This document shows, piece after piece, positions 5,814 to 62,352 of a stretch of 64,000 bases of DNA. The notes below the pieces were generated by a model. That model made no database searches and had not been told where the DNA came from. It saw only the letters and a list, made by a program, of their open reading frames with translations. The stretch spans positions 62,001-126,000 of the IMG/VR virus record IMGVR_UViG_3300042387_000948. One strand, 5' to 3'. Within the stretch, counting starts at the first letter, position 1, and each line of letters starts with the position of its first letter. The position numbers and the translations under genes are program-made.

Positions 5814-7340
5814 TTATTTTTTACTAATTTTACCTTTAGTTAGTGCATCAAAGAATTCAGTATTTTTCATAACTTTAATTCCATTTAGCATATTTTTACG
5901 ATTAACAGAATCAAACTCATCTTTAATACTTTTTGGTGTATATCCATAAGAATCTAAAGTATGTTGTGATACTTCTTTAGTTATATGACCCATCCCCATC
6001 ATAGTCCAACACCAAACCCCCCAATTACCTGCTCCACGATAAAAATCAAAGTTCAACGTAGATGGGCATCTGTGTTTTGCCACGTCTAATATATGTTTTA
6101 CTTTATCGGTTCGTTTTAAATCATACTTACAATACTTCCAAAACTCCGTATCTTCTCTATCACTCATATAGTGTAGTTGAATCAAATCTTTAATATCATC
6201 AAATAACTTATTTAAAAAAGTATTGTGCTGATTTATATTGGTTTCAAAGTTTACATTTTCTTTTGTAGTGGCAAAATTTAATGAAATAGTTGATAGGTAA
6301 TCTAATTGTACGATGGTAGTATGTATGGATGTTGCTTCTAATGGTTCAACAAATCCAGCAGATAATCCCACCGCAACCACATTCTTTACCCAAATGTTTT
6401 CTAATCTACCACAATCAAATTTAATATTACGGATGGGTTCTACATCTTTACCTAATGATTTCCTTAATTCAGCTAATGCTTTCTCTTCGGTAGTAAACAT
6501 ATCCGAATAAACGTACCCACAACCATATCTTTCTTGCGTTGGTATTTTCCACATCCATCCATTTGATAGAGCGTGTGATAGTGTTTCCAACTTAGGAACT
6601 TCGTTTGGTTCGAATTGTTGGATGAATGGCATTGCATTATTTGTTGGTAGGTATTCTGAATAACTTTTCCACCCACCACCCATTGGATTGATTAAAACTC
6701 TAGCAAATCCACTACAATCAATCCACAAATCACCTTCGATAGTTCCTTTGGTAGTTTCTACACTGTCTAACTCACCATTTTGTGTATTTTTGTTTAAGGA
6801 TAGGACTTCACTATCTATTACTCTAACACCATTTTTAAGTGCATATTCTTTCCAATATTTACCCACCGCATGTGCATCAAAGTGATACGAATGGCCCATT
6901 ATACTTCTACCATCGGTTGAAATATAAGATGATAGATTTTTGTTCATAAGATAACCAGATGGAGATGCGTTTGCATAATCACCTAATATATGAGATACTA
7001 ATAAATGAGTATCAATAGTATGATGATTTGTTTCGGACTGTTGTATAGGACTTAGGAATTCAGTACCCACACCATTCCAATCTTTAAATCGTATGCCTAA
7101 CTTTAATGTTGATTTAGTTTTATTTAAGAATTCGGGTTCATTTATACCCCAATTTTTAAAATGATGATTTACTATTTGAGTAAATGTACCAGTTGAACCT
7201 TCACCTGCACCAATTATTGGTATTTTGGATGATTCTATAACTGTGATATCATTTATATTATTACCTGATTGATTAAATCTTGCCACATAACACGCAGCCA
7301 TCCAACCTGCAGTTCCCCCACCTACTATAACAATTTTCAT
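5814..7340 (-). CDS. Flavin-dependent tryptophan halogenase family protein
   Basis: GGGTAG, IGAGEGS, catalytic K in TLKLGIRF, WMWKIP, FVEPLEATSI. Confidence 0.9.
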   Translation of the reverse strand: MKIVIVGGGTAGWMAACYVARFNQSGNNINDITVIESSKIPIIGAGEGSTGTFTQIVNHHFKNWGINEPEFLNKTKSTLKLGIRFKDWNGVGTEFLSPIQQSETNHHTIDTHLLVSHILGDYANASPSGYLMNKNLSSYISTDGRSIMGHSYHFDAHAVGKYWKEYALKNGVRVIDSEVLSLNKNTQNGELDSVETTKGTIEGDLWIDCSGFARVLINPMGGGWKSYSEYLPTNNAMPFIQQFEPNEVPKLETLSHALSNGWMWKIPTQERYGCGYVYSDMFTTEEKALAELRKSLGKDVEPIRNIKFDCGRLENIWVKNVVAVGLSAGFVEPLEATSIHTTIVQLDYLSTISLNFATTKENVNFETNINQHNTFLNKLFDDIKDLIQLHYMSDREDTEFWKYCKYDLKRTDKVKHILDVAKHRCPSTLNFDFYRGAGNWGVWCWTMMGMGHITKEVSQHTLDSYGYTPKSIKDEFDSVNRKNMLNGIKVMKNTEFFDALTKGKISKK

Positions 7341-7648: not shown

Positions 7649-8194
7649 TTATATTCTAACTACCCAACTCCCATCTTTAAATGTAGCGTCTACTTTATCA
7701 TCAAAAATTTTACCCAAGTTATGTCTAATATTTCCCCAACCATAATCATGCCCACATACAAACCCACCTGGCTTAATTATACTTTTATAATGCGTAATAT
7801 CATAGTAAACACCATCAACGGTATGCAATCCATCAATGTAAACCATATCCCATTGTTGTTGGTTTAGGATTGGGAACGCATTTTCTGATGTATCTCTTAT
7901 TGATTTTATGTTTGATAGGGGTAATGTATTCTTTATAAATTCAGCATATACTTTATCAAATGGTGCATATCCGTTTGAAATAAAATCAAAATCAACATCA
8001 TAATTAACAAAAGGGTCTACCGATACCACTTCTTTAAAGTTTTGGGCAAACATTAAAGTACTTTCACCAACATAACTACCAATTTCAATCATCCTCATTT
8101 CAGATGTTGGTGTTACATTATTTACCCAATCAATCATTTGTTGCAAACCCTCTCTATGTTCAGGAAATCGCATTTGATAAAAATTATCTTTCAT
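7649..8194 (-). CDS. Class I SAM-dependent methyltransferase (Methyltransf_24-like)
   Basis: IEIGSYVGES, YIDGLH, GGFVCGHDY. Confidence 0.85.
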   Translation of the reverse strand: MKDNFYQMRFPEHREGLQQMIDWVNNVTPTSEMRMIEIGSYVGESTLMFAQNFKEVVSVDPFVNYDVDFDFISNGYAPFDKVYAEFIKNTLPLSNIKSIRDTSENAFPILNQQQWDMVYIDGLHTVDGVYYDITHYKSIIKPGGFVCGHDYGWGNIRHNLGKIFDDKVDATFKDGSWVVRI

Positions 8195-8703: not shown

Positions 8704-8795
8704 TGGTAGAGAGTACCGGATTCGAACCGGTGGACAGGTTTAACCCCATCGGCAGTTTAGCAAACTACTGGTATCAGCCACTCACCCAACTCTCT
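8704..8795 (-). tRNA. tRNA-Ser(GCT)
   Basis: Cloverleaf, long variable arm, encoded CCA. Confidence 0.9.
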
Positions 8796-8804
8796 ATAAA
8801 TATA

Positions 8805-8978
8805 TGGCTGTAGTGGGAGGATTCGAACCATCCACAATGCGATTCAGTTAGTAACATCCGCCGGCCGGCTTGGTGGTCTACCCCATATTACTAACCTATT
8901 TCGTACTCATCACCCCCGAGACAGGAGGGCTTGTCTGCCAAATTAACACACGTGCTAATCATTTTCCAACACACTACA
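8805..8978 (-). ncRNA. Giant tRNA-Asp(GTC)-like RNA with D-loop and variable-arm insertions
   Basis: 7-bp acceptor TGTAGTG/CACTACA plus GCCA, TTCGAAT T-loop, CCCTC-CTGTCTC-GGGGG anticodon arm, ~80 nt structured variable insert. Confidence 0.7.
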
Positions 8979-8985
8979 ATTTTAA

Positions 8986-9074
8986 TGGAAGAGGGAGTAG
9001 GATTCGAACCCACGGACCTGTTACAGTCTCTTGATTTCAAGTCAAGTGCGATAGACCAACTCTGCCATCCCTCC
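8986..9074 (-). tRNA. tRNA-Ser(TGA)
   Basis: Cloverleaf, long variable arm, CCA. Confidence 0.9.
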
Positions 9075-9079
9075 TTATT

Positions 9080-9646
9080 TTACTCTTTTTCTGCTTTTCT
9101 TTCTTCTACTACTTCTAAATATGCCTGATACAAAGAATCCTTATGCTCCATTAATTCATCAATTACACCCTGTCTATAATCTTCAGCTTCTTCATCATCT
9201 TCACTCCAATATTTATCCAAATCCAATTTAATATCCAAATCTTCCATATCATCGTAACCAAATCCAAATACAAATGCTCCCATAGGGTCTAAACATTCAT
9301 CTTCGTATGTACCATATAGAACTACATCTTTATTAATACCACATAATATATATGTCAACTTTTCTAAAAATTGAGTTGGTACACTCCAAGCTGATGTCAT
9401 GTAGATTTGGACTTCGGATTCAAAGTCTTCAGTAACGGCTGATTCTACTTCCAACCACTTTGCACCAATGTTATCATACCACCAATCTAACTTGCTGAAA
9501 TCCACATCTCCATACATTTGTTTGATGATGTGTTCAACATTGGTATAGTACTCATTAGTACCATCGTTAAAGATTTCTTTTAATTTGTCATACGATGGTT
9601 GGTCCAAATTCCCAATCGTAAGTGAGGTACTCATATGATTTGCCAT
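9080..9646 (-). CDS. Hypothetical protein (YubB/DUF1281 ferredoxin-like-domain type) inside tRNA array
   Basis: WWYDNIGAKW and TSAWSVP motifs. Confidence 0.65.
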   Translation of the reverse strand: MANHMSTSLTIGNLDQPSYDKLKEIFNDGTNEYYTNVEHIIKQMYGDVDFSKLDWWYDNIGAKWLEVESAVTEDFESEVQIYMTSAWSVPTQFLEKLTYILCGINKDVVLYGTYEDECLDPMGAFVFGFGYDDMEDLDIKLDLDKYWSEDDEEAEDYRQGVIDELMEHKDSLYQAYLEVVEERKAEKE

Positions 9647-9661
9647 AACTTATATTTTGTT

Positions 9662-9745
9662 TGGTGGGAGTAGAAGGACTCGAACCTCCGAACTCGTAGA
9701 GAAGTGATTTACAGTCACCCGCAATTGCCACTATGCGATACTCCC
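9662..9745 (-). tRNA. tRNA-Tyr(GTA)
   Basis: Cloverleaf, variable arm, CCA. Confidence 0.92.
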
Positions 9746-9749
9746 AAAT

Positions 9750-9857
9750 GTGTGGGTAGGAGTCTCATCCCACACTAGACTTAAGGTTTCGAGTTCTTTT
9801 ACAACTTACTCTGAAAGTTATTCGCCCGCGTGTCCTTCACCTTAAAGCGGGAGCTCC
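9750..9857 (-). ncRNA. Putative structured RNA (nested hairpin)
   Basis: GGAG/CTCC, TTAAGGT/ACCTTAA and ATAACTT/AAGTTGT nested stems. Confidence 0.45.
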
Positions 9858-9860
9858 TTA

Positions 9861-9935
9861 TGGAGCAGGTAGTCAGATTCGAACTGACGTCTCCGGTTTG
9901 GAAGACCAGAGCACTAACCACTGTGCTATACCTGC
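9861..9935 (-). tRNA. tRNA-Gly(TCC)
   Basis: Cloverleaf, U73, CCA. Confidence 0.92.
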
Positions 9936-9940
9936 AAATT

Positions 9941-10153
9941 TCCCCACATTGAGATTCCATGTGAGTAGTTATTTATAGTTTTTCCTTTCAAAAACCCAAT
10001 GCATCTTACTGCTTAAAAAGTCAACACTACTGGGAGGAGATGTGTCGTTCTCCTTTATTCCCACGACACCGGCGTTTAAGGATGTCCGGTCCAATACCCT
10101 ATCCATTGTTAAATGAGTCTTGGATTAAAGACTACCGAGCATCTCTTACTCGT
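9941..10153 (-). ncRNA. Putative ~210 nt multi-stem RNA with pseudoknot
   Basis: GAGTA/TACTC closure, AGTCTT/AAGACT, TGTCGT/ACGACA whose loop GGGA..GGAGA pairs with TCTCCTCCC. Confidence 0.55.
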
Positions 10154-10155
10154 TG

Positions 10156-10229
10156 TGGACCAGGTAGGAATCGAACCTACTACCTTTTGATTATGAGTCA
10201 ACTGCTCTAACCGAGTGAGCTACAAGTCC
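10156..10229 (-). tRNA. tRNA-CAT (Ile2 lysidine-type or elongator Met)
   Basis: Cloverleaf, CTCATAA loop. Confidence 0.85.
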
Positions 10230-10281
10230 ATATCGTTTAATCTAACGATAAAATCTGATATCGTTTCTTTCAACGATAATA

Positions 10282-10393
10282 TGGGTACCGGAGGAGAGAT
10301 TGGTTACTCTCACGCAGTCCTTTTCGGTTACTGCACCACTTCGAATCAGGCACGTCTAATGGTTGTACTTCCCATTCTTTCCGCCACTCCGGC
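10282..10393 (-). ncRNA. Aberrant tRNA-Leu-like RNA
   Basis: Acceptor GCCGGAG/CTCCGGT, hairpin in D-loop, long variable arm, non-canonical T-loop TAACCAAT, weak anticodon stem. Confidence 0.6.
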
Positions 10394-10403
10394 ATATAAT
10401 TTT

Positions 10404-10479
10404 TGGTGGAGGATAACGGATTCGAACCGTTGTCTCCGCCGTGCAAGGGCGGTGCTAAAACCAGCTCAGCTAATCCCCC
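10404..10479 (-). tRNA. tRNA-Ala(TGC)
   Basis: Cloverleaf, G3:U70, CCA. Confidence 0.93.
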
Positions 10480-10481
10480 AA

Positions 10482-10650
10482 ACCGAAACCGCTATTTTCA
10501 TAACGGCTTCTTTTCTCCTTCTCCACTTACCTCTTTCGAGTGGAAGGCAAGATTGTAATGTAACGGCTGTGCGGTTTGTGTCCGAGATTGCTCTCCAGTT
10601 TCCATTTCATTCTTAGCGTCCGTTCCGCCATTCTTTCGAATCGTTACATT
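10482..10650 (-). ncRNA. Putative structured RNA rich in GNRA-capped hairpins
   Basis: AATGTAACG/CGTTACATT closure; ATTC-GAAA-GAAT, GAGA-GCAA-TCTC, CTC-GAAA-GAG, GCCGTTAT-GAAA-ATAGCGGT. Confidence 0.6.
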
Positions 10651-10651
10651 G

Positions 10652-10734
10652 TACTTCGGACTGGAATCGAACCAGCACTCCATAAAGAAACAGCATTTTA
10701 AGTGCTGCGGGTCTACCGATTCCCCCACCGAAGC
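10652..10734 (-). tRNA. tRNA-Leu(TAA)
   Basis: Cloverleaf with variable arm. Confidence 0.9.
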
Positions 10735-10743
10735 GAACTGAAC

Positions 10744-11097
10744 CTACACTTTTGTAAGTTTGGCTTTCTTAAACTTTGTGTGTTTCTGCTTACCACTAAT
10801 AAGAATATCCACACGTTTTGTGAACCTAGCATTCATTACATCTCTTACTACATAAACTCCATTGTGTTTACCGATGCCTGTAATTCGTACTTTAGTTCCA
10901 AATTTGTACTTTCTCTTCAAATCTCTACTAACTGCCACAATTCGGGTTGTTCCTTTCTTAATTCGAAACCCACTTGCCGTTAATCGAGGTGTACTATCTG
11001 TCTGCGATGTTGTTGCAGAATAAGTTGTCACTGTTACTATATCCGTTGCGTTTACTCCGAAACTCAAAAGGATACATACTATGGTCTTTTTTATCAT
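10744..11097 (-). CDS. 3D (Asp-Asp-Asp) domain protein, secreted
   Basis: Signal peptide; TYS..QTD..TASG, VAVSRD, FGTKV, VRD, RVDI. Confidence 0.8.
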   Translation of the reverse strand: MIKKTIVCILLSFGVNATDIVTVTTYSATTSQTDSTPRLTASGFRIKKGTTRIVAVSRDLKRKYKFGTKVRITGIGKHNGVYVVRDVMNARFTKRVDILISGKQKHTKFKKAKLTKV

Positions 11098-11111
11098 ATA
11101 GTTTTATTTAG

Positions 11112-11185
11112 TGACTCCGTTTGGGTTCGAACCAAAGACCTATTCTTTAGAAGAGAATTGCTCTATCCAGCTGAGCTACGGAGCC
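11112..11185 (-). tRNA. tRNA-Arg(TCT)
   Basis: Cloverleaf. Confidence 0.92.
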
Positions 11186-11220
11186 GTTATTTATTCCTAC
11201 TTATAAATCTTTTATATAAC

Positions 11221-11586
11221 TTAAATCTTCATAGAGTCATCATCTTTACTTTCGGATGGTTTCTCTAATTTCAATTCAATTGGCGGATACTTTTTGATAA
11301 TCTCTAACGAATCTTCTGCTGCCCATTTCTCTTTTAATTGAGCACGTTTTTCGATGGTTTTGATATCAGCTTTAAGTTTATCAATTCTATCATTGATTTT
11401 CTTAATCTTTACCCATCTGGTTGCGTAATCTGATGTTGTTACTGTCTCCCATTCAATATCCCTTTGAAGGACTTTGATTTCTTTCTTAATTGTTTCAATT
11501 GCTCCTCTATCGTTTGATAATTGAGGGTCTACACCACCCAACAAACTATTGAAGAACATTGTAATTGATAATACGATTTCTTTCAT
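11221..11586 (-). CDS. Hypothetical coiled-coil protein
   Basis: ORF downstream of promoter 11604-11635. Confidence 0.65.
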   Translation of the reverse strand: MKEIVLSITMFFNSLLGGVDPQLSNDRGAIETIKKEIKVLQRDIEWETVTTSDYATRWVKIKKINDRIDKLKADIKTIEKRAQLKEKWAAEDSLEIIKKYPPIELKLEKPSESKDDDSMKI

Positions 11587-11653
11587 AACTTATTTTGTTT
11601 TTACAAAGATACGCAAAAGTTTTCACATATCCTAATTTTATTTTTACTTTTTG

Positions 11654-11724
11654 ATGCCTTACTAGGATTCGAACCTAGACTAACTCCGCCAAAAGGAGTT
11701 GCGCTACCCTTACGCTATAAGGCA
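11654..11724 (-). tRNA. tRNA-Gln(TTG)
   Basis: Cloverleaf, U1-A72. Confidence 0.9.
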
Positions 11725-11729
11725 ATTCG

Positions 11730-11803
11730 CAGTTCGTACGGGATTCGAACCCGTGGTCTCTTCCGTGACAGGGAAGCATGTTGGGCCTCTACACCAACGA
11801 ACT
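11730..11803 (-). tRNA. tRNA-Asp(GTC)
   Basis: Cloverleaf, G73. Confidence 0.92.
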
Positions 11804-11809
11804 AAAATA

Positions 11810-11992
11810 AAACAAACTTTTTGTGTCCTTCTACACATCATAACCAACTTTCATTGGCGGTTACATTTCGCATTGGGTTAATTACTCCCCACTTATAGTA
11901 ACTCTCTCCTGACCTGTATGACTATTCCGGCTTCAACAGGACCCATTTGGATTTTATATACCGAGGGGTTACACCACAGTCGTTGTTTGTTT
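11810..11992 (-). ncRNA. Putative ~180 nt structured RNA
   Basis: AAACAAAC/GTTTGTTT closure, TGGGT/ACCCA, CCTGT/ACAGG, GTTACT/AGTAAT, CCAAT-GAAA-GTTGG. Confidence 0.55.
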
Positions 11993-11994
11993 TG

Positions 11995-12067
11995 AGCTTT
12001 TGATAGGACTCGAACCTACAACCTGCTGATTACAAATCAGCTGCACTACCAATTGTGCTACAAAAGC
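11995..12067 (-). tRNA. tRNA-Thr(TGT)
   Basis: Cloverleaf. Confidence 0.92.
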
Positions 12068-12071
12068 AATT

Positions 12072-12121
12072 TGTTCGTCTTTCCGAGCTGTCATCGGTTG
12101 ATTATATACAACACCACCGAA
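12072..12121 (-). ncRNA. Small RNA motif (Flavo-1-like)
   Basis: CGGTGG..hairpin..CCGATGACAGCTCGGAAAGACGAAC; resemblance recalled, not searched. Confidence 0.45.
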
Positions 12122-12125
12122 AGTG

Positions 12126-12197
12126 TACTCCCAACGGGAATCGAACCCGTGACTCATCCGTGAAAGGGACGTGACTTAACCGCTTGTCGATAGGAGC
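12126..12197 (-). tRNA. tRNA-Glu(TTC)
   Basis: Cloverleaf. Confidence 0.92.
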
Positions 12198-12202
12198 AGA
12201 TG

Positions 12203-12332
12203 TGCGGATGGGAGGATTCGAACCTCCAGTTACCTCTTCATTGTAACTAATTACAATGGCCAGCCTTTATTTTTGTTATCTCCTTACGTTATGGAGTTCC
12301 CACATTACCATATACTTTAGCTGGTCACCCGC
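12203..12332 (-). ncRNA. tRNA-like RNA with giant D-arm and no anticodon loop
   Basis: Acceptor GCGGGTG/CATCCGC, perfect T-arm GGAGG-TTCGAAT-CCTCC, CCAGC/GCTGG stem enclosing ~55 nt, CATTGTAA-TTAG-TTACAATG hairpin. Confidence 0.65.
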
Positions 12333-12353
12333 TTTTTAATAATTATCAATATT

Positions 12354-12362
12354 TCAAAGAAC
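12354..12362 (-). promoter_or_regulatory. boxA-like antitermination site (GTTCTTTGA)
   Basis: Immediately downstream of promoter 12367-12398; identical at 13875 and 15301. Confidence 0.65.
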
Positions 12363-12417
12363 ACTACAAAAATACGAAACTTTTTTCATATTTCCAAACA
12401 ATTCTTACTATTTAATT

Positions 12418-12492
12418 TGGGGTGTAAGGGCGGTATCGAACCGACTTCCCTGGCTCCACAAACCAGTACATCACCTTAATGCTTCAAACACC
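12418..12492 (-). tRNA. tRNA-His(GTG)
   Basis: Cloverleaf with G-1:C73, CCA. Confidence 0.88.
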
Positions 12493-12499
12493 ATTTTAA

Positions 12500-12778
12500 T
12501 TAGAAGCGGGATTCCGCCGCCCAATCTTCATTTACTAAATACCAATATTCTTCTCTTAAATAAATAATATCGTAACTACCATTACTATCAATCGAAACTA
12601 TATTTTTCTTAACCAACGAACCCAATGCCCCACGAAGAACTTTGGTAGAGATTCCCAATTCTGAACTCAAATCATTTACATCCACATCAGAGAAACCTGG
12701 TTCAGCATACAAACCACCAATAAAGGTAGTAAGGGTTTTGGTTTCCAATTCAGTCAAATTCAATTCGTTAATCATCAT
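12500..12778 (-). CDS. Winged helix-turn-helix protein
   Basis: DVNDLSSELGISTKVLRGALGSLVKKNIV HTH pattern; class II promoter upstream. Confidence 0.65.
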   Translation of the reverse strand: MMINELNLTELETKTLTTFIGGLYAEPGFSDVDVNDLSSELGISTKVLRGALGSLVKKNIVSIDSNGSYDIIYLREEYWYLVNEDWAAESRF

Positions 12779-12899
12779 ATCTTTAGGTGGAGGGAGGGGA
12801 GTTTGTCTCTCAACCACGTATTAAAGGTACGCAATTTTAATGAAATAAACAAGCCTTTTGTAAAATATTTTTAAATTATTTTTAAATTATTTTTAAAGT

Positions 12900-12967
12900 T
12901 GCGTGTACGAGGTTCGAACTCATTTGGCTTTCCTTATGAGAGATAGCTCTTTTCCACTAAGCCACGC
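12900..12967 (-). pseudogene. Degenerate tRNA-CAT-like sequence
   Basis: CTCATAA loop and TTCGAAC T-loop but only ~5-bp acceptor and weak stems. Confidence 0.5.
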
Positions 12968-12973
12968 AATGAT

Positions 12974-13048
12974 TGGTGTGATTGAAGGGAATCGAACCCT
13001 TATTGAATGCACCACAAACATTTGTCCTACCATTAGACGACAATCACC
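12974..13048 (-). tRNA. tRNA-His(GTG), second copy (A73)
   Basis: Cloverleaf, CCA. Confidence 0.82.
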
Positions 13049-13049
13049 G

Positions 13050-13120
13050 AGGCGAGTACAGGATTCGAACCTGTGTAAGAGCTTTTGCAGAGCTCCATAT
13101 AACCACTCTAACAACTCGCC
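13050..13120 (-). tRNA. tRNA-Cys(GCA)
   Basis: Cloverleaf, U73. Confidence 0.88.
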
Positions 13121-13125
13121 TTATG

Positions 13126-13197
13126 TAGTTCCGGAGAGAATCGAACTCCCATCAATTGGTTCGTAGCCAATCATTTTATCCGTTAAACTACGGAACT
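13126..13197 (-). tRNA. tRNA-Arg(ACG)
   Basis: Cloverleaf. Confidence 0.9.
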
Positions 13198-13203
13198 ATT
13201 TTG

Positions 13204-13274
13204 CACACCCACTAGGATTCGAACCCAGAACAACGCTTTTGGAGAGCGGCATGATACCATTTCACTATGGATGC
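13204..13274 (-). tRNA. tRNA-Trp(CCA)
   Basis: Cloverleaf. Confidence 0.85.
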
Positions 13275-13295
13275 GGATAATACTAAATCGTATTG

Positions 13296-13373
13296 TTGGC
13301 AAGAGGGGATTCGAACCCATATTTTCAACCAATTACCTTACTCCAACTTATCAGATTGGGTGGATACTTGCCA
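13296..13373 (-). ncRNA. D-armless tRNA-Ile(GAT)-like RNA
   Basis: Acceptor TGGCAAG/CTTGCCA, CCAAT-CTGATAA-GTTGG anticodon arm, TTCGAAT T-loop, 7-nt connector instead of D-arm, 22-nt variable region. Confidence 0.7.
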
Positions 13374-13382
13374 ATGTTAATG

Positions 13383-13460
13383 TGGTAGGGTAAGAGGGAT
13401 TTGAACCCCCATGATGTCTACAACCCAAATGTAGCGGCTTACCAGTTAGCCCATTACCCT
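13383..13460 (-). tRNA. tRNA-Pro(TGG)
   Basis: Cloverleaf, CCA. Confidence 0.87.
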
Positions 13461-13466
13461 ATATTG

Positions 13467-13540
13467 TTCCCCCGGCGTGATTCGAACACGCGACCCCCTA
13501 TTTAAAAGATAGGTGCATCTACCAGCTGAGCTACGAGAGA
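13467..13540 (-). tRNA. tRNA-Lys(TTT)
   Basis: Cloverleaf. Confidence 0.87.
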
Positions 13541-13589
13541 ATTTGTTTGTCATACTTGTCACTTTCCATAGTATAAATTGTTTAATTGT

Positions 13590-13666
13590 TGGTGGAGCAG
13601 ACAGGTATCGAACCTGTTCCTCTGGATTTTCAGTCCAGCGCAATGAACCTCATCTGCCACTACTCC
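13590..13666 (-). tRNA. tRNA-Phe(GAA)
   Basis: Cloverleaf, CCA. Confidence 0.9.
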
Positions 13667-13704
13667 CTATTCCGATTTTGATATGTAGCATCGGGAACTA
13701 CCTG

Positions 13705-13778
13705 TGTCCATAGTAGGACTCGAACCTACACAAACTGGTTTCTAAGACCAGTGCGGTTGCCAATTACGCCATACGGAC
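13705..13778 (-). tRNA. tRNA-Leu(TAG), short variable loop
   Basis: Cloverleaf, CTTAGAA loop, 5-nt variable loop. Confidence 0.85.
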
Positions 13779-13786
13779 ATTTAATG

Positions 13787-13859
13787 TAGTGAGTGAGGGA
13801 CTCGAACCCCCAACATCCGCCATGTAAAGACGGCGCTCTACCAATTGAGCTAACCCACT
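13787..13859 (-). tRNA. tRNA-Val(TAC)
   Basis: Cloverleaf. Confidence 0.92.
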
Positions 13860-13874
13860 ATTTTTACCACGATG

Positions 13875-13883
13875 TCAAAGAAC
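13875..13883 (-). promoter_or_regulatory. boxA-like antitermination site (GTTCTTTGA)
   Basis: Follows the first tRNA downstream of the attenuator. Confidence 0.65.
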
Positions 13884-13889
13884 TCTATT

Positions 13890-13962
13890 GAGGGGAGGGA
13901 GAATTACGATATCTCGACCTGATGATTAACAGTCATCTGCTCTGCCTCTGAGCTACCACCCC
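13890..13962 (-). tRNA. tRNA-Asn(GTT), atypical T-loop ATCGTAA
   Basis: Cloverleaf. Confidence 0.85.
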
Positions 13963-13969
13963 TTAAAAC

Positions 13970-14007
13970 AAAAAAACCCCTAACCGATTTTGATTTCAGT
14001 TAGGGGT
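13970..14007 (-). terminator. Intrinsic terminator of candidate attenuator
   Basis: ACCCCTAACTGA-loop-TCGGTTAGGGGT followed by T-run, ending 7 nt before tRNA-Asn. Confidence 0.85.
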
Positions 14008-14032
14008 CTTTTAACCTTTATATGTAGTTTGG

Positions 14033-14167
14033 TTATTCCACTTCTACATTTTGTACCCCTAACGTTATTTCAATTCTCTTCGAATTAAAATCACACACAC
14101 CAATCCCAGCCCACAACATATTCGTTGCCGGTTGATAATTGGGTGTATGTAGGTTAAGAGTTTTCAT
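14033..14167 (-). CDS. Candidate attenuator leader peptide (44 aa, all 20 amino acids)
   Basis: MKTLNLHTPNYQPATNMLWAGIGVCDFNSKRIEITLGVQNVEVE; overlaps antiterminator arm 14055-14063. Confidence 0.75.
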   Translation of the reverse strand: MKTLNLHTPNYQPATNMLWAGIGVCDFNSKRIEITLGVQNVEVE

Positions 14168-14180
14168 TCTATTTCTTTTA

Positions 14181-14189
14181 TATAAGTAT
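14181..14189 (-). promoter_or_regulatory. Putative phage late-type promoter motif ATAYTTATA
   Basis: Same motif upstream of genes at 16189, 25201, 34447, 35596, 36110, 42087, 43911, 46400, 63058. Confidence 0.6.
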
Positions 14190-14299
14190 GTATTATTTAA
14201 TTTTTCAGTTTTTCCACATCTTTTAGTGTTATGGGAGACCGAAATCTCCCACTCCACAGTGTAATAAAAATCAAGATATGAAAACAACTCACGTTGTAG

Positions 14300-14370
14300 A
14301 GCGGTGGGATGGAATTGAACCATCTCCTTCGACCTGGACGGCCGATGTGCTACCGTAACACTTCCTCCGC
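14300..14370 (-). tRNA. Aberrant tRNA-Gly(TCC)-like (G33)
   Basis: GCG acceptor plus U73, loop CGTCCAG, A:A mismatch at 5:68. Confidence 0.7.
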
Positions 14371-14375
14371 TTGTG

Positions 14376-14445
14376 AGCGGAACTAAGGAATCGAACCCCA
14401 ACTTCTCTACGGATGTAGAGCGTGCTACCTTTACACTAATACCGC
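14376..14445 (-). tRNA. Aberrant tRNA-Gly(TCC)-like (6-nt loop)
   Basis: GCG acceptor plus U73, loop CATCCG, U:U mismatch at 5:68. Confidence 0.65.
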
Positions 14446-14449
14446 TTTT

Positions 14450-15290
14450 AGTGGTTACGGATGAGAATACTCACGTAAGCGAACCAGCTTTTGAAACCTT
14501 ATGTTTTAGTTTCGTTTCCACTACCTTTTGAGTAGTACCGATTCAATGCGGGTTAGTAATGCCAACCACTCATAAAGTTACAAACTACTCTCTCCCTAAT
14601 CCGTTTCTTCTACTCTGCCGAGCAAACTCACACTTGCGGTGTTAGAAATTTTTCAAAAGAATCACATTCATCTTGCGGATGTTTGTGGCAAGGAACAACT
14701 CCCTACTATGTACGCACCTTTCGTTCGTAACTGATGGACACTTTTGCTCTTTTTGTTTAAGTTTGCACTACCAGCAAATTGAGTTTTGGTTGTAGATTTA
14801 TTCAAGTAGTGGTCCACCCATCAGCTTCCCCACCTTTTGAACGAAGAAATACTGAACTACTCGATGTGTTATCCCTAACACCATATTTCAAGTCATCTTC
14901 ATAACTCCTACCTTGGTAGGTGAAGAGTAAGGATAATAACAGCACCACCTGTACTTTATCTTACCTTTCGGTTTTAAGATTACTCTAATATTGAATCACG
15001 CAATGATAAGGAGAGATTAAGTCCTTACTTCTTACAATAACTCTATGGATTATTCTTATTGGTATCCCTACCTCAACCGAACTATCTACATTAGCCCAGT
15101 CATCTCACCACCCTCTTTACAGTGTTACCCTCAATACTAAAGGTGAAATGATATTCCACTTGCTTACTCGAGCTCCTTACGAAGCCGCAAACCACTTAAC
15201 CAAATGATTCACTTTATCCTACTTTCGTAGTTTATTTCACGACCATAAGCGGCCGATTGAATACTATGTGAAACAAGTTCACTATGTACT
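14450..15290 (-). ncRNA. Large ornate ncRNA, probable GOLLD RNA
   Basis: ~840 nt without a long ORF, many GNRA hairpins and AGTA/GAA loop-E-like motifs, own promoter and boxA, adjacent to tRNAs; size and context fit GOLLD. Confidence 0.65.
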
Positions 15291-16212: not shown

Positions 16213-16434
16213 TCATAACCCATATACTGGTTTGATAGATTCTTCTCTATTTAAAGTGATGTTTCTATCCATTCGTATATCTTTATTACTTAGAGTCCAG
16301 ATTTCTCCATCATCCATTCCGCAAGTAAAGTATAAATCGTGCTCCTGAGAGTAATCTATACACATAAATGCAAATCCTTTCATTCCGTCCTTTACCCTAA
16401 CTATGGGTATGGTTGGATTCAATTGTATTATCAT
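16213..16434 (-). CDS. Hypothetical protein
   Basis: MIIQLNPTIP...DYSQEHDL phage-type motif; start trimmed. Confidence 0.65.
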   Translation of the reverse strand: MIIQLNPTIPIVRVKDGMKGFAFMCIDYSQEHDLYFTCGMDDGEIWTLSNKDIRMDRNITLNREESIKPVYGL

Positions 16435-17068
16435 TCTTTTGTATTTTAGGGAACAATATTTGCTCCATAAAGTAACGTGCTCTTTCTTCACCTATCTTTG
16501 CTTTCAATGCTCCAAAGGTTCTAGGGTTTGATGCTTGAACTTCACAATAACGATTTTGGATATCAATAACTTTATTAATATCACTCGCCTCTTCTTTTAA
16601 ATATAACCCATCCTTCAAAAACGTTTTGTACTTTTCTAATGACCAACTGCAAAACCTCATAAACTCACTATCAGATTCAGGTTTAATCATAATAAATTTA
16701 TCCGAAAAAACAGTTGCCCATTGAGGTAGTGGTTTTCTCCCATTAAAATCTATATCCTCATCAAAGTTATACTCCTTAATGCCAGGTGATAAGTCCATAT
16801 AAACACCAGTTACACCCGATTTAGTAGTTATGACATCAAAACCATATATGGGTTCTGGTGATGTTGGATTTGGGAATGTGGTAACGTGTAGTACCTCAAT
16901 TGCCCTATCACCATATCTTTCAACGTGTGCCATTCTATACACATCAGATTCAAAACGATGATTCACCCACCCAAAATCTTCAGTAGGTAATACTTTACAA
17001 CCCGGTGCGTGTTTCATTATAGAAAGAAACCTATCGGCTAACTCATCCAAATATTCGGTGTAGTTCAT
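16397..17068 (-). CDS. pcyA: Ferredoxin-dependent bilin reductase, PcyA/PcyX family
   Basis: RMAHVE, LHVTTFP, PIYGFDV, DLSP, LPQWATVFS, QNRYC..Q..NPRT, FMEQILFP. Confidence 0.85.
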   Translation of the reverse strand: MNYTEYLDELADRFLSIMKHAPGCKVLPTEDFGWVNHRFESDVYRMAHVERYGDRAIEVLHVTTFPNPTSPEPIYGFDVITTKSGVTGVYMDLSPGIKEYNFDEDIDFNGRKPLPQWATVFSDKFIMIKPESDSEFMRFCSWSLEKYKTFLKDGLYLKEEASDINKVIDIQNRYCEVQASNPRTFGALKAKIGEERARYFMEQILFPKIQKNDNTIESNHTHS

Positions 17069-61363: not shown

Positions 61364-62352
61364 AAGTGTTTTTTTATTCTTTCTGTCCAAACTTTTAATG
61401 AATAGTTTTCTTCGTAGTTTCTTTTTGCCAAAGTACTACAACTATTATAAAAATCTTTATCTTTTGCCAATAATCCAGCCATTGATTTAGCCTTATCTAT
61501 ATTCTTAATATCAATCGATAATACTGAATGACATAATCTTTGTGTATCAACTTCTTCATTACCAATACAAGGTATTCCAAAGTATGCACAATTAAGTGAA
61601 AATGTACCGGCTGCTACCGTTGGCATTAGATGTACTGCGTATTTGTAAGTTGATAATTCTCTCATCCAATCATTCCATATAAGTCTTGGTAAATGATTTA
61701 ATCCATCCATATACTCTTCGTTCTCTCTTTTAGCGTGAGAATCTTGCACCCAAATTGGTACATCAAACTTTTGAGCTACCATATAACTTTCAAACCCACC
61801 ATACCATCTTGCGAAGTTACCTCCAATGATTACCTTATCTTCTTTAGTAGGTACTATATCTTTGACGTAATCATCTATCATAAGTGAATAGATACTTTGT
61901 ACTTCTTTGGTAGGAAATAACCCCTTATAGTAGGGAATATCGGATTCGTTATGGGCAAATATACTATCACATTCGGATAACATATTGTAGAATCCAATTT
62001 GGTCTGAAATTTCATAATCATTCCACCACCAATGCGGTCCTTCTTGCACATAGTGTACTTTATGATTTCCTTTTTCTTTTATTCTCTGAACGATGGATTG
62101 TTGTAATAATTCTGAAATTGGATTGACTCCGTTTACCAATCTACTCCCCTCCGAACTTAAAAAAGTTTTACCTTTTGGAAATATAATAAATACATGGTCA
62201 TAGTTTGTTAGGTTTTTATCCACACCAAACAAATGAATGTTATAGTGGTCAGCATCTAAAGCGTGCATCCAAGCAAACTCCGTTCTCATATTTGGATGAT
62301 TTTCTGGCACTTTACCAACAAAACCCATTTCAGTTAAGAATGCTATTCTCAT
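61360..62352 (-). CDS. Glycosyltransferase-like protein
   Basis: C-terminal AAGTFSLNCAYFGIPCIG; cluster context. Confidence 0.6.
   Translation of the reverse strand: MRIAFLTEMGFVGKVPENHPNMRTEFAWMHALDADHYNIHLFGVDKNLTNYDHVFIIFPKGKTFLSSEGSRLVNGVNPISELLQQSIVQRIKEKGNHKVHYVQEGPHWWWNDYEISDQIGFYNMLSECDSIFAHNESDIPYYKGLFPTKEVQSIYSLMIDDYVKDIVPTKEDKVIIGGNFARWYGGFESYMVAQKFDVPIWVQDSHAKRENEEYMDGLNHLPRLIWNDWMRELSTYKYAVHLMPTVAAGTFSLNCAYFGIPCIGNEEVDTQRLCHSVLSIDIKNIDKAKSMAGLLAKDKDFYNSCSTLAKRNYEENYSLKVWTERIKKHL

Follow-up and report, generated by a model that had tools for sequence, protein, structure and literature searches.

A conserved giant tRNA-like RNA, almost certainly not used for decoding, in Cytophagales bacteria and their lake phages

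The stretch of DNA analysed here (the window) comprises 64,000 nt of the virus record IMGVR_UViG_3300042387_000948, positions 62,001 to 126,000, and contains an array of 25 tRNA genes. Within this array a 174-nt element lies on the minus strand at 8805–8978, 7 nt after tRNA-Ser(tga) and 9 nt before tRNA-Ser(gct), while a canonical tRNA-Asp is found at 11729–11803. The element folds as a cloverleaf with an encoded CCA, a GUC anticodon arm, a T-loop, a hairpin in the D-loop and a large variable domain, as an earlier note made from the sequence alone had described. It is not called by ARAGORN, and it has no match in Rfam 15, even at E values up to 10; the same was true of ten diverse members of the family to which it belongs. 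A model of this family (R1) scores the element at 150.4 bits, and it is the only copy in the 207-kb genome.

The 5′ strand of the acceptor stem (8972–8978) is UGUAGUG, with U1, G2 and U3 near-invariant in the family, and it pairs with CACUACA in the 3′ segment (8805–8815), which also carries the discriminator G73 and the CCA. All seven pairs form in all copies and pairs 3–7 covary, while U1:A72 is present in 135/142 phage and 127/127 cellular copies and G2:C71 in 142/143 and 125/127, respectively. G73 is found in 143/143 phage and 127/127 cellular copies, and the next base is C in every bounded phage copy (142/142 and 53/53) and in 129/129 cellular copies, although the full CCA is encoded in only a minority. 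U8, G9 and the 5′ strand of the D-stem, UUGG, follow at 8966–8971; U8 and G9 are invariant, and the D-stem pairs 10:25 and 11:24 covary (UA/AU/GC and UA/CG). The D-loop hairpin (8942–8959) reads AUUAGCA-CGUG-UGUUAAU and is an optional decoration specific to phages, present in 46% of phage and 0% of cellular copies, with 35 distinct sequences, a median hairpin energy of −6.4 kcal/mol and visible compensatory variants. The 3′ part of the D-loop, with G18 and G19 (UUGGCAG), and the D-stem 3′ strand ACAA occupy 8931–8941, in which GGCA is near-invariant and the motif GAAUUGGYAGAC resembles that of tRNA-Leu.

The anticodon arm (8913–8929) is CCCUC-CUGUCUC-GGGGG, and its stem covaries (CCCUC/GRGGG, CCCAC/GUGGG, CCGUA/UACGG and others). 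The variable domain (8834–8912) is 79 nt long, and consists of the closing stems V1a (GAUG/CAUU) and V1b (CGA/UCG), an internal loop (AAUAG/UGAA), a long stem V2 of 11–12 bp (8885–8895 with 8847–8857) and a tip of two elements; V1a, V1b and V2 all have pairs changed on both sides, and the length of the domain ranges from 20 to 98 nt in phages and from 25 to 137 nt in cells. Tip hairpin 1 (8872–8884), GGGGUAGACCACC, contains the conserved GACCAC, which is present in 95% of phage and 35% of cellular copies but is invariant in sequence, so that its pairing cannot be tested by covariation. It also contains GAC, the complement of the GUC anticodon; both are invariant, so a pairing between the two is untestable by covariation, and short forms without the hairpin keep the same anticodon loop, which argues against such pairing as the reason for loop conservation. 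The second tip element (8860–8869) is a perfect 10-nt palindrome, GCCGGCCGGC. The T-arm (8816–8833) is GGAUGG-UUCGAAU-CCUCC, with a T-loop conserved in the family as GUUCRANYC.

The description in the earlier note therefore holds, with five corrections. The D-loop hairpin is realistically 7 bp with a CGUG loop, rather than 8 bp with a 2-nt loop. The T-stem is not fully regular, having 5 bp plus one bulged U in its 5′ strand, as in 27 of the first 103 phage copies. Position 37 is U rather than a purine. The second small tip hairpin is the palindrome described above, whose own hairpin is weak (−4.0 kcal/mol) while its self-duplex is strong (−26.9 kcal/mol). Lastly, the body has a type II, tRNA-Leu-like frame, meaning that the variable domain is an enlarged long arm and not an insertion into a tRNA-Asp; "tRNA-Asp-like", as the note called it, describes only the anticodon loop and the discriminator.

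The single-sequence fold is unremarkable (minimum free energy z = −0.02) and uninformative, but homologues settle the structure. We found 195 phage loci (143 unique) and 127 unique bacterial copies. On an alignment of 52 sequences, 96.6% of cells are paired, against 43–51% when partners are slid, the covariation score is 0.464 against 0.06–0.09, 25 of 41 pairs change on both sides, and 0 of 500 shuffles reach the observed values. The inference of the earlier note that this is a maintained tRNA mimic rather than a decaying gene is thus strongly supported, by compensatory changes across more than 250 distinct homologues and by the systematic loss of decoding features while the core of the L-shape and both functional ends stay fixed, although these data do not decide between the decoy, scaffold and amino-acid carrier roles that the note offered. 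Position 37 is a pyrimidine in 142/142 phage and 126/127 cellular copies and U33 is present in only 77–78%, although the window copy retains it. Of 459 ordinary tRNAs from the same loci, by contrast, 458 have U33 and 457 have a purine at 37, and 16 co-resident canonical tRNA-Asp genes have A37. U35, C36 and C38 are near-invariant, G34 is present in 100% of phage and 83% of cellular copies, and searches with the variable domain alone recovered no anticodon other than GUC in phages.

The family is primarily cellular, and phages appear to have copied and elaborated it. Bona fide copies occur in about 105 of 151 Cytophagales genomes, often in tandem arrays and alongside canonical tRNA-Asp; a raw tally of 128/151 overcounts, as hits of 82–87 nt at 52–56 bits are ordinary tRNA-Leu genes and not short family members. 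In five complete genomes the copy number runs parallel to that of canonical tRNA-Asp (7/7, 7/7, 6/4, 5/2 and 2/1), but this does not generalise clearly across the order and, without a tRNA-Glu control, may reflect lineage-specific tandem amplification. What distinguishes the phage copies, besides the D-loop hairpin, is a perfect palindrome of 8–12 nt at the tip (92% against 20% of cellular copies). A perfect palindrome of at least 8 nt follows GACCAC in 91/96 phage copies, with about 20 distinct sequences, against 7.6% in shuffles and 6/53 in the D-loop hairpin control, and only 4/44 cellular copies have one there. Unconstrained homodimer cofolding was uninformative, as it swaps every stem between the two molecules and does the same with control tRNAs. 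The isolated tips, however, favour the self-duplex over the hairpin by a median ddG of −16.1 kcal/mol, against −5.9 kcal/mol for the control hairpins. The phage RNAs are therefore probably dimers, although this remains a thermodynamic and comparative inference.

Taken together, the element is best explained as a phage-borne, elaborated copy of a bacterial tRNA-like RNA that does not decode. In the absence of evidence on expression or transcript ends, we infer that it is cut out of the array transcript by the ordinary tRNA machinery (RNase P, 3′ trimming and CCA completion) and folds into an L-shape, and that the pyrimidine at 37, the dispensable U33, the frequent T-stem bulge and the large variable domain keep it out of ribosomal decoding. 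The conservation of U1:A72, G2:C71, G73 and C74 at one end and of U35, C36, Y37 and C38 at the other suggests that a host protein reads both ends. Aspartyl-tRNA synthetase (AspRS) is the best candidate, because all five strong aspartate determinants (G73, G34, U35, C36 and C38; PMC9976931) and the minor G2:C71 are invariant in the phage copies; on this reading the RNA may be an AspRS ligand or an aspartyl carrier outside translation, and the phage versions, most likely acting as two-fold symmetric homodimers, may either supply the function of the host RNA during infection or saturate its partner. This reading is tentative, and somewhat less likely than not as a whole. The replacement of G34 by A, C or U in 17% of cellular copies, for example in four tandem copies with CUAUCCC, is not predicted by a strict AspRS identity, G10 (a determinant in bacteria) is not conserved, position 10 being U, A or G, and 1:72 is U:A rather than the G:C typical of bacterial tRNA-Asp. 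Class II AspRS probably approaches from the side of the variable arm, with which a giant arm might clash. No conserved partner protein was found next to the gene: the small flanking ORFs of different phage groups are unannotated and unrelated (hhalign probability below 2%), and no AspRS is encoded in the 207-kb phage genome. More speculatively, and improbable on present evidence, this could be a new class of aminoacylatable carrier RNA excluded from translation, a type II tRNA derivative conserved across an order of bacteria, charged by AspRS or SerRS and used outside the ribosome, which phages turned into a homodimer possibly matched to the homodimeric class II synthetase; it would then be the first natural dimeric tRNA mimic.

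Other explanations are each less likely. The tRNA body may only provide processing and stability to a variable domain that does the work, as a protein-binding or guide-like module or, in small phages, as a packaging-related RNA comparable in spirit to phi29 pRNA. The tip is indeed the most variable part between copies, even within one tandem array, it carries the conserved GACCAC and palindrome in phages, and in 37 small-phage loci the gene lies about 415 nt upstream of the large terminase gene, with the portal gene about 2.9 kb downstream. However, short members with a plain variable arm (93–104 nt) keep the same acceptor end and anticodon loop, whose invariance a mere scaffold would not need, the gene sits in tRNA arrays and not near packaging genes in large phages, and a two-fold dimer does not obviously match a 12-fold portal, making this reading unlikely. 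A decoy for a tRNA-targeting host factor, such as an anticodon nuclease or another defence or toxin enzyme aimed at the acidic-box (NUC) tRNAs, is more doubtful still. Small phages carry the element as their only tRNA-like gene, its loop differs from that of canonical tRNA-Asp only at position 37, which could make it an uncleavable competitor, and phage tRNAs may in other cases evade tRNA-cleaving defences; yet a counter-defence does not explain a family that is primarily chromosomal in the bacteria themselves and often amplified, the strict acceptor end is not needed for such a decoy, and no defence gene is linked to it.

Recognition by SerRS is about as doubtful as the decoy. A tRNA-Leu-like type II frame with G73 in place of A73 is the classic switch from leucine to serine identity (PMC9976931), and SerRS, which ignores the anticodon, would charge such an RNA as it does tRNA-Sec and allo-tRNAs; G2:C71, R4:Y69 and a large variable arm are also present, and in phage arrays the gene usually sits next to tRNA-Ser genes. 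On the other hand, C72, C11:G24 and G30:C40 of the bacterial serine set are lacking, since A72 is invariant, 11:24 is mostly U:A and 30:40 is U:G or U:A, and SerRS would not explain the near-invariant U35-C36-Y37-C38 loop. A carrier for tRNA-dependent asparagine formation, charged by AspRS and amidated by GatCAB, is improbable. U1:A72 is the stated GatCAB determinant and the G1:C72/U20a antideterminants are absent, the gene is divergent from an AsnC-like regulator about 140 nt away in 10/16 bacterial loci, complete genomes with the RNA have GatB although they also have GlnRS, and AsnRS was found in the two MAGs tested. The prediction that asnB would be missing nevertheless failed, as AsnB is above its cut-off in 136/151 genomes of the order, and GatB is in 126/151 genomes of the phylum against about 15 with the RNA, so that co-occurrence is uninformative. 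The AsnC-like hit is below the curated cut-off and is followed by the SUF operon, so the synteny may concern Fe-S assembly or be mere inheritance, and cellular loci without this gene show no common neighbour. Least likely of all is a decoding tRNA-Asp with a very long variable arm, or one whose insertions are spliced out. The GUC anticodon, the intact cloverleaf, the place in a tRNA array and the ARAGORN calls of the 93-nt short forms as tRNA-Asp speak for it. Against this stand the pyrimidine at 37 in about 99.6% of copies, the loss of U33 in about 22%, the bulged T-stems and the coexistence of canonical tRNA-Asp; excision would still leave Y37, the variable domain is conserved and covaries in its own right, no group I intron or other Rfam match was found, and the hosts are bacteria.

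tRNA mimics with known roles (tmRNA, plant-virus tRNA-like ends and Y RNAs) are few, and this family, missed by ARAGORN and Rfam and hence unannotated in hundreds of genomes, is apparently unstudied. Literature searches found no description of it, with the possible exception of the csRNA DNAVirus_1850 of Fremin et al., 2023 (PMC10690425), which may overlap with it, being described as found 27 times in IMG/VR and as overlapping an ARAGORN tRNA-Asp call at only one site, which is the behaviour of this family; that paper gives no function, no cellular distribution and no analysis of positions 33 and 37 or of the palindrome. With type II tRNAs (tRNA-Leu, tRNA-Ser and tRNA-Sec) and allo-tRNAs (PMC5389517) the RNA shares a cloverleaf with a long variable arm, a 3-bp D-stem, the tRNA-Leu-like D-loop, the A15:U48 Levitt pair, G18G19 and the T-loop, as well as the G73 of tRNA-Ser and tRNA-Sec, and ordinary tRNA-Leu genes are the best non-family hits of model R1. 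It differs in a variable domain of 25–137 nt with its own junctions, against roughly 13–21 nt, in the pyrimidine at 37 and dispensable U33, and, from allo-tRNAs and tRNA-Sec, in its normal 7/5 acceptor/T arrangement. With canonical bacterial tRNA-Asp it shares G73, G2:C71, G34-U35-C36 and C38, and its loop departs from the CUGUCAC of the co-resident tRNA-Asp only at position 37, but the type II frame, U1:A72, the unconserved G10 and the giant variable domain set it apart, and in cells position 34 is not always G.

Aminoacyl carriers that probably work outside decoding, such as the S. aureus tRNA-Gly for peptidoglycan and the B. cereus tRNA-Other, offer a parallel in concept, that of a tRNA-shaped RNA keeping synthetase recognition while disfavouring EF-Tu and ribosome use, although they are likely to be of normal size, and neither charging nor an acceptor enzyme is shown for the far larger RNA described here. 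tmRNA and the bacterial Y RNA YrlA (PMC4201824) are likewise larger non-coding RNAs that mimic tRNA and are also carried by phages, and phage tmRNA genes lie right beside this RNA in two loci, but never on it. tmRNA lacks an anticodon arm and has a coding tag and G3:U70, in YrlA the 5′ and 3′ ends lie in a Ro-binding stem rather than an acceptor stem, and neither Rfam model matches. The palindrome is reminiscent of self-pairing RNAs, perhaps including the HIV-1 dimerisation initiation site, phi29 pRNA and the GOLLD/ROOL multimers, in which a short self-complementary or loop–loop sequence at the tip of a helix may hold identical RNAs together. GOLLD is encoded in the same phages, but here the palindrome of 8–12 nt sits on a tRNA-shaped body and is specific to the phage copies.

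A 174-nt sequence lies on the minus strand at window 8805-8978, 7 nt downstream of tRNA-Ser(tga) and 9 nt upstream of tRNA-Ser(gct), inside a 25-gene tRNA array (8704-14445) that ends beside a GOLLD RNA. All of the elements listed in the earlier note, which had read this sequence as a giant tRNA-Asp-like RNA with two structured insertions, are present: a 7-bp acceptor stem with G73-CCA, a D-arm whose loop carries an extra hairpin, an anticodon arm with the loop CUGUCUC, a 79-nt variable domain and a T-arm. Some details require correction, as the D-loop hairpin, which the note had drawn with a two-base GT loop, is 7 bp plus a CGUG loop, the T-stem has a bulged U, and position 37 is U. ARAGORN and Rfam 15 do not call the element, even at E up to 10, and its folding energy is no better than that of shuffled sequences (z = -0.02). 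On its own, therefore, the sequence proves little.

Homologues show that this is a real structured RNA. The 207-kb IMG/VR virus record has no close GenBank relative, but searches with exact and degenerate DNA patterns found the element in many other viral contigs, giving 195 loci and 143 unique sequences once the boundaries had been defined. On an alignment of 52 unique sequences, the RNAalifold consensus is a cloverleaf plus a branched variable domain, in which 25 of 41 pairs keep pairing through changes on both sides. Of all cells, 96.6% are paired, against 43-51% when the partners are slid, while the covariation score is 0.464 against 0.06-0.09, and none of 500 shuffles reaches the observed values. 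Every helix has double changes, including the two closing stems and the long stem of the variable domain. A covariance model of the family (R1) finds one copy in the phage genome, at 150 bits.

The element is almost certainly not used for decoding. As two of the search patterns contained the anticodon loop, the search was repeated with patterns taken only from the variable domain, and these still recovered only GUC anticodons, within the loops CUGUCUC, UCGUCUC, CCGUCUC, UUGUCUC, CAGUCCC and CUGUCCC. Across 142 phage sequences position 37 is always a pyrimidine, and position 33 is U in only 109. In 459 ordinary tRNAs from the same loci, by contrast, U33 occurs in 458 and a purine at position 37 in 457, and all 16 co-resident canonical tRNA-Asp genes have A37. 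A quarter of the phage copies, including that of the window, have a bulged U in the T-stem. A canonical tRNA-Asp always accompanies the element in the arrays (window 11729-11803). From this systematic absence of decoding features we infer that the RNA is excluded from the ribosome.

Both ends of the molecule are strongly constrained. While acceptor pairs 3-7 covary freely, G73, the following C74, G2:C71 and the 1:72 pair (U:A, rarely A:U, never G:C) are fixed, as are U8, G9, A14, A15, G18G19, the T-loop, and G34, U35, C36 and C38. We infer that the RNA undergoes tRNA-type maturation and that a host protein recognises it.

The variable domain ends in a conserved hairpin (GGGKWGACCAC) followed, 2-3 nt later, by a perfect palindrome. 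A palindrome of at least 8 nt is found in 91 of 96 unique sequences, with about 20 different sequences, and the central tetranucleotide is always self-complementary (GGCC, UGCA, CAUG, GCGC, CCGG, CUAG and others). Shuffled segments give 7.6%, and the D-loop hairpin, used as an internal control, gives 6 of 53. In one copy, at locus L030 (1474-1643, minus strand), the D-loop hairpin is itself a perfect 20-nt palindrome (GAUUGACACGCGUGUCAAUC), unlike most D-loop hairpins. Taken alone the tip folds poorly, with a median hairpin of -1.55 kcal/mol and 11 of 34 variants forming none, yet it pairs strongly with a second copy (mostly -12 to -27 kcal/mol, median gain -16.1), whereas the D-loop hairpins are stable alone (-6.4) and gain only -5.9. 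A loop has no reason to be self-complementary in a plain hairpin, and hence intermolecular pairing, i.e. a homodimer, is inferred for the phage form on thermodynamic and comparative grounds only.

In large phages (100-330-kb contigs) the gene lies in tRNA arrays, usually right after tRNA-Ser(tga). GOLLD accompanies it in 6 of 11 loci scanned and a phage tmRNA in 5, sometimes immediately downstream. In the window, GOLLD (Rfam RF02032, 284.6 bits; 14458-14864, minus strand) directly abuts the tRNA array, and GOLLD also lies near the giant RNA in viral loci L003, L015, L017, L020, L023, L033 and L030. Phage-encoded tmRNA genes with tag peptides occur at L003:5143-5517, L008:1511-1856, L017:960-1369, L020:1840-2225, L023:11150-11551 and L033:1028-1383, and in L003 and L008 they lie immediately downstream of the giant RNA, in the order tRNA-Ser(tga), giant RNA, tmRNA. 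These lake phages therefore carry GOLLD, tmRNA, a full tRNA set and the giant tRNA-like RNA together. Two odd tRNA-like genes lie next to GOLLD in the window (14299-14445, minus strand), one a tRNA-Gly(tcc) with G33 (loop CGUCCAG, 43 bits) and the other a gene of unassigned type for which ARAGORN reports a two-base anticodon 'tc' (35 bits), and there is a second, weak tRNA-His at 12418-12491 (33 bits). The array is flanked by ORFs matching a tryptophan halogenase family (phrog_2928, E = 2e-100; 5814-7340, minus strand), a DNA methyltransferase (phrog_2675; 7649-8194, minus strand) and a ferredoxin oxidoreductase-type auxiliary gene (phrog_7278; 16397-17068, minus strand).

In 37 loci of smaller phages the element is the only tRNA-like gene, and there it lies about 415 nt upstream of the large terminase gene, with an exonuclease gene upstream and the portal gene downstream. 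The small ORFs flanking it in different phage groups are unrelated to one another and unannotated. Short members of 93-104 nt with a plain variable arm (L027:1229-1321, L031:244-336, L043:7348-7440 and L065:4043-4146) keep the same ends and the CUGUCUC loop. Related small phages carry either a 93-nt or a 160-nt version (L049, L057) at the same locus, so the variable domain changes quickly between close relatives. The phage from which the window derives is widespread in lakes, its array region being found in 14 lake metagenome studies.

The family is cellular. Three Bacteroidota MAG contigs carried copies, and we therefore searched the order of the Algoriphagus MAG (Cytophagales) with model R1. 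Hits at E up to 1e-6 were obtained in 128 of 151 genomes, but 23 of those have only weak hits, in the range where ordinary tRNA-Leu genes score. Bona fide members (E up to 4e-14, 84-157 bits, 107-212 nt, whole model covered) therefore occur in about 105 of 151 genomes, on chromosomal contigs and often as tandem arrays of 2-7 copies about 190 nt apart. Phylum-wide, only about 15 of 151 genomes have it. Among 127 unique cellular copies collected from about 93 genomes, U1:A72 is present in 127/127, G2:C71 in 125, U3:A70 in 123 and G73 in 127. C74 follows G73 in 129/129 cellular copies. The loop fits YNNUCYC in 126/127, while G34 is present in only 83% (the rest A, C or U) and U33 in 78%. ARAGORN calls none of them. 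Canonical tRNA-Asp genes coexist with these copies, and some Cytophagales genomes carry seven tandem canonical tRNA-Asp genes at 114-nt spacing (genomes G071:C1:3113272-3113988 and G150:C1:4194487-4195201) as well as seven tandem giant RNAs (G071:C1:3545330-3546434 and G150:C1:3754740-3755848), although this parallel in copy number is anecdotal and does not clearly generalise across the order.

The RNA has been copied into the phages of these bacteria, and the phage copies are elaborated in comparison with the cellular ones. A D-loop hairpin is present in 46% of phage against 0% of cellular copies, the GACCAC hairpin in 95% against 35%, a palindrome of at least 8 nt in the variable domain in 92% against 20%, and G34 in 100% against 83%. 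In 10 of 16 bacterial loci the gene is divergent, about 140 nt away, from an AsnC-like Lrp-family regulator (L275:8485-8955, plus strand, and relatives), whose best hit is AsnC at 2e-47, although this is below the curated cut-off. The regulator is followed by the SUF operon (sufB, sufC, sufS, sufE, SufT, bacilliredoxin), which could mean amino-acid- or Fe-S-responsive control of the RNA, or only inherited gene order. The large arrays lie elsewhere, with no common neighbour.

Of the proteins that might recognise the RNA, AspRS is the best fit. Aspartate identity rests on five strong determinants (G73, G34, U35, C36, C38), with G2:C71 as a minor one (PMC9976931), and all six are invariant in the phage copies, although G10 and G1:C72 are not kept and the phage encodes no AspRS. 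SerRS is a further candidate, since G73, G2:C71, R4:Y69 and a large variable arm are listed for bacterial serine identity, and a change from A73 to G73 switches leucine identity to serine (PMC9976931). However, C72, C11:G24 and G30:C40 are not matched, and SerRS would not explain the conserved loop. An intron reading does not rescue a decoding role, as excising the extra parts would still leave U37. The possibility of an Asp-to-Asn carrier was tested because U1:A72 is the stated determinant of the amidotransferase GatCAB, because the five RNA-positive complete Cytophagales genomes have GatB even though they also have GlnRS, and because two MAGs of the order have AsnRS and GatB. This idea gained no support, with AsnB above its cut-off in 136/151 genomes of the order and GatB present in 126/151 sampled genomes of the phylum, far more than carry the RNA.

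No paper describing the family was found, although one catalogue entry, csRNA DNAVirus_1850 (PMC10690425), may overlap with it. Ordinary tRNA-Leu genes are the best non-family hits of model R1, which, together with the D-loop GAAUUGGYAGAC and the 3-bp D-stem, shows that the frame is type II and that the giant domain is an expanded long variable arm.
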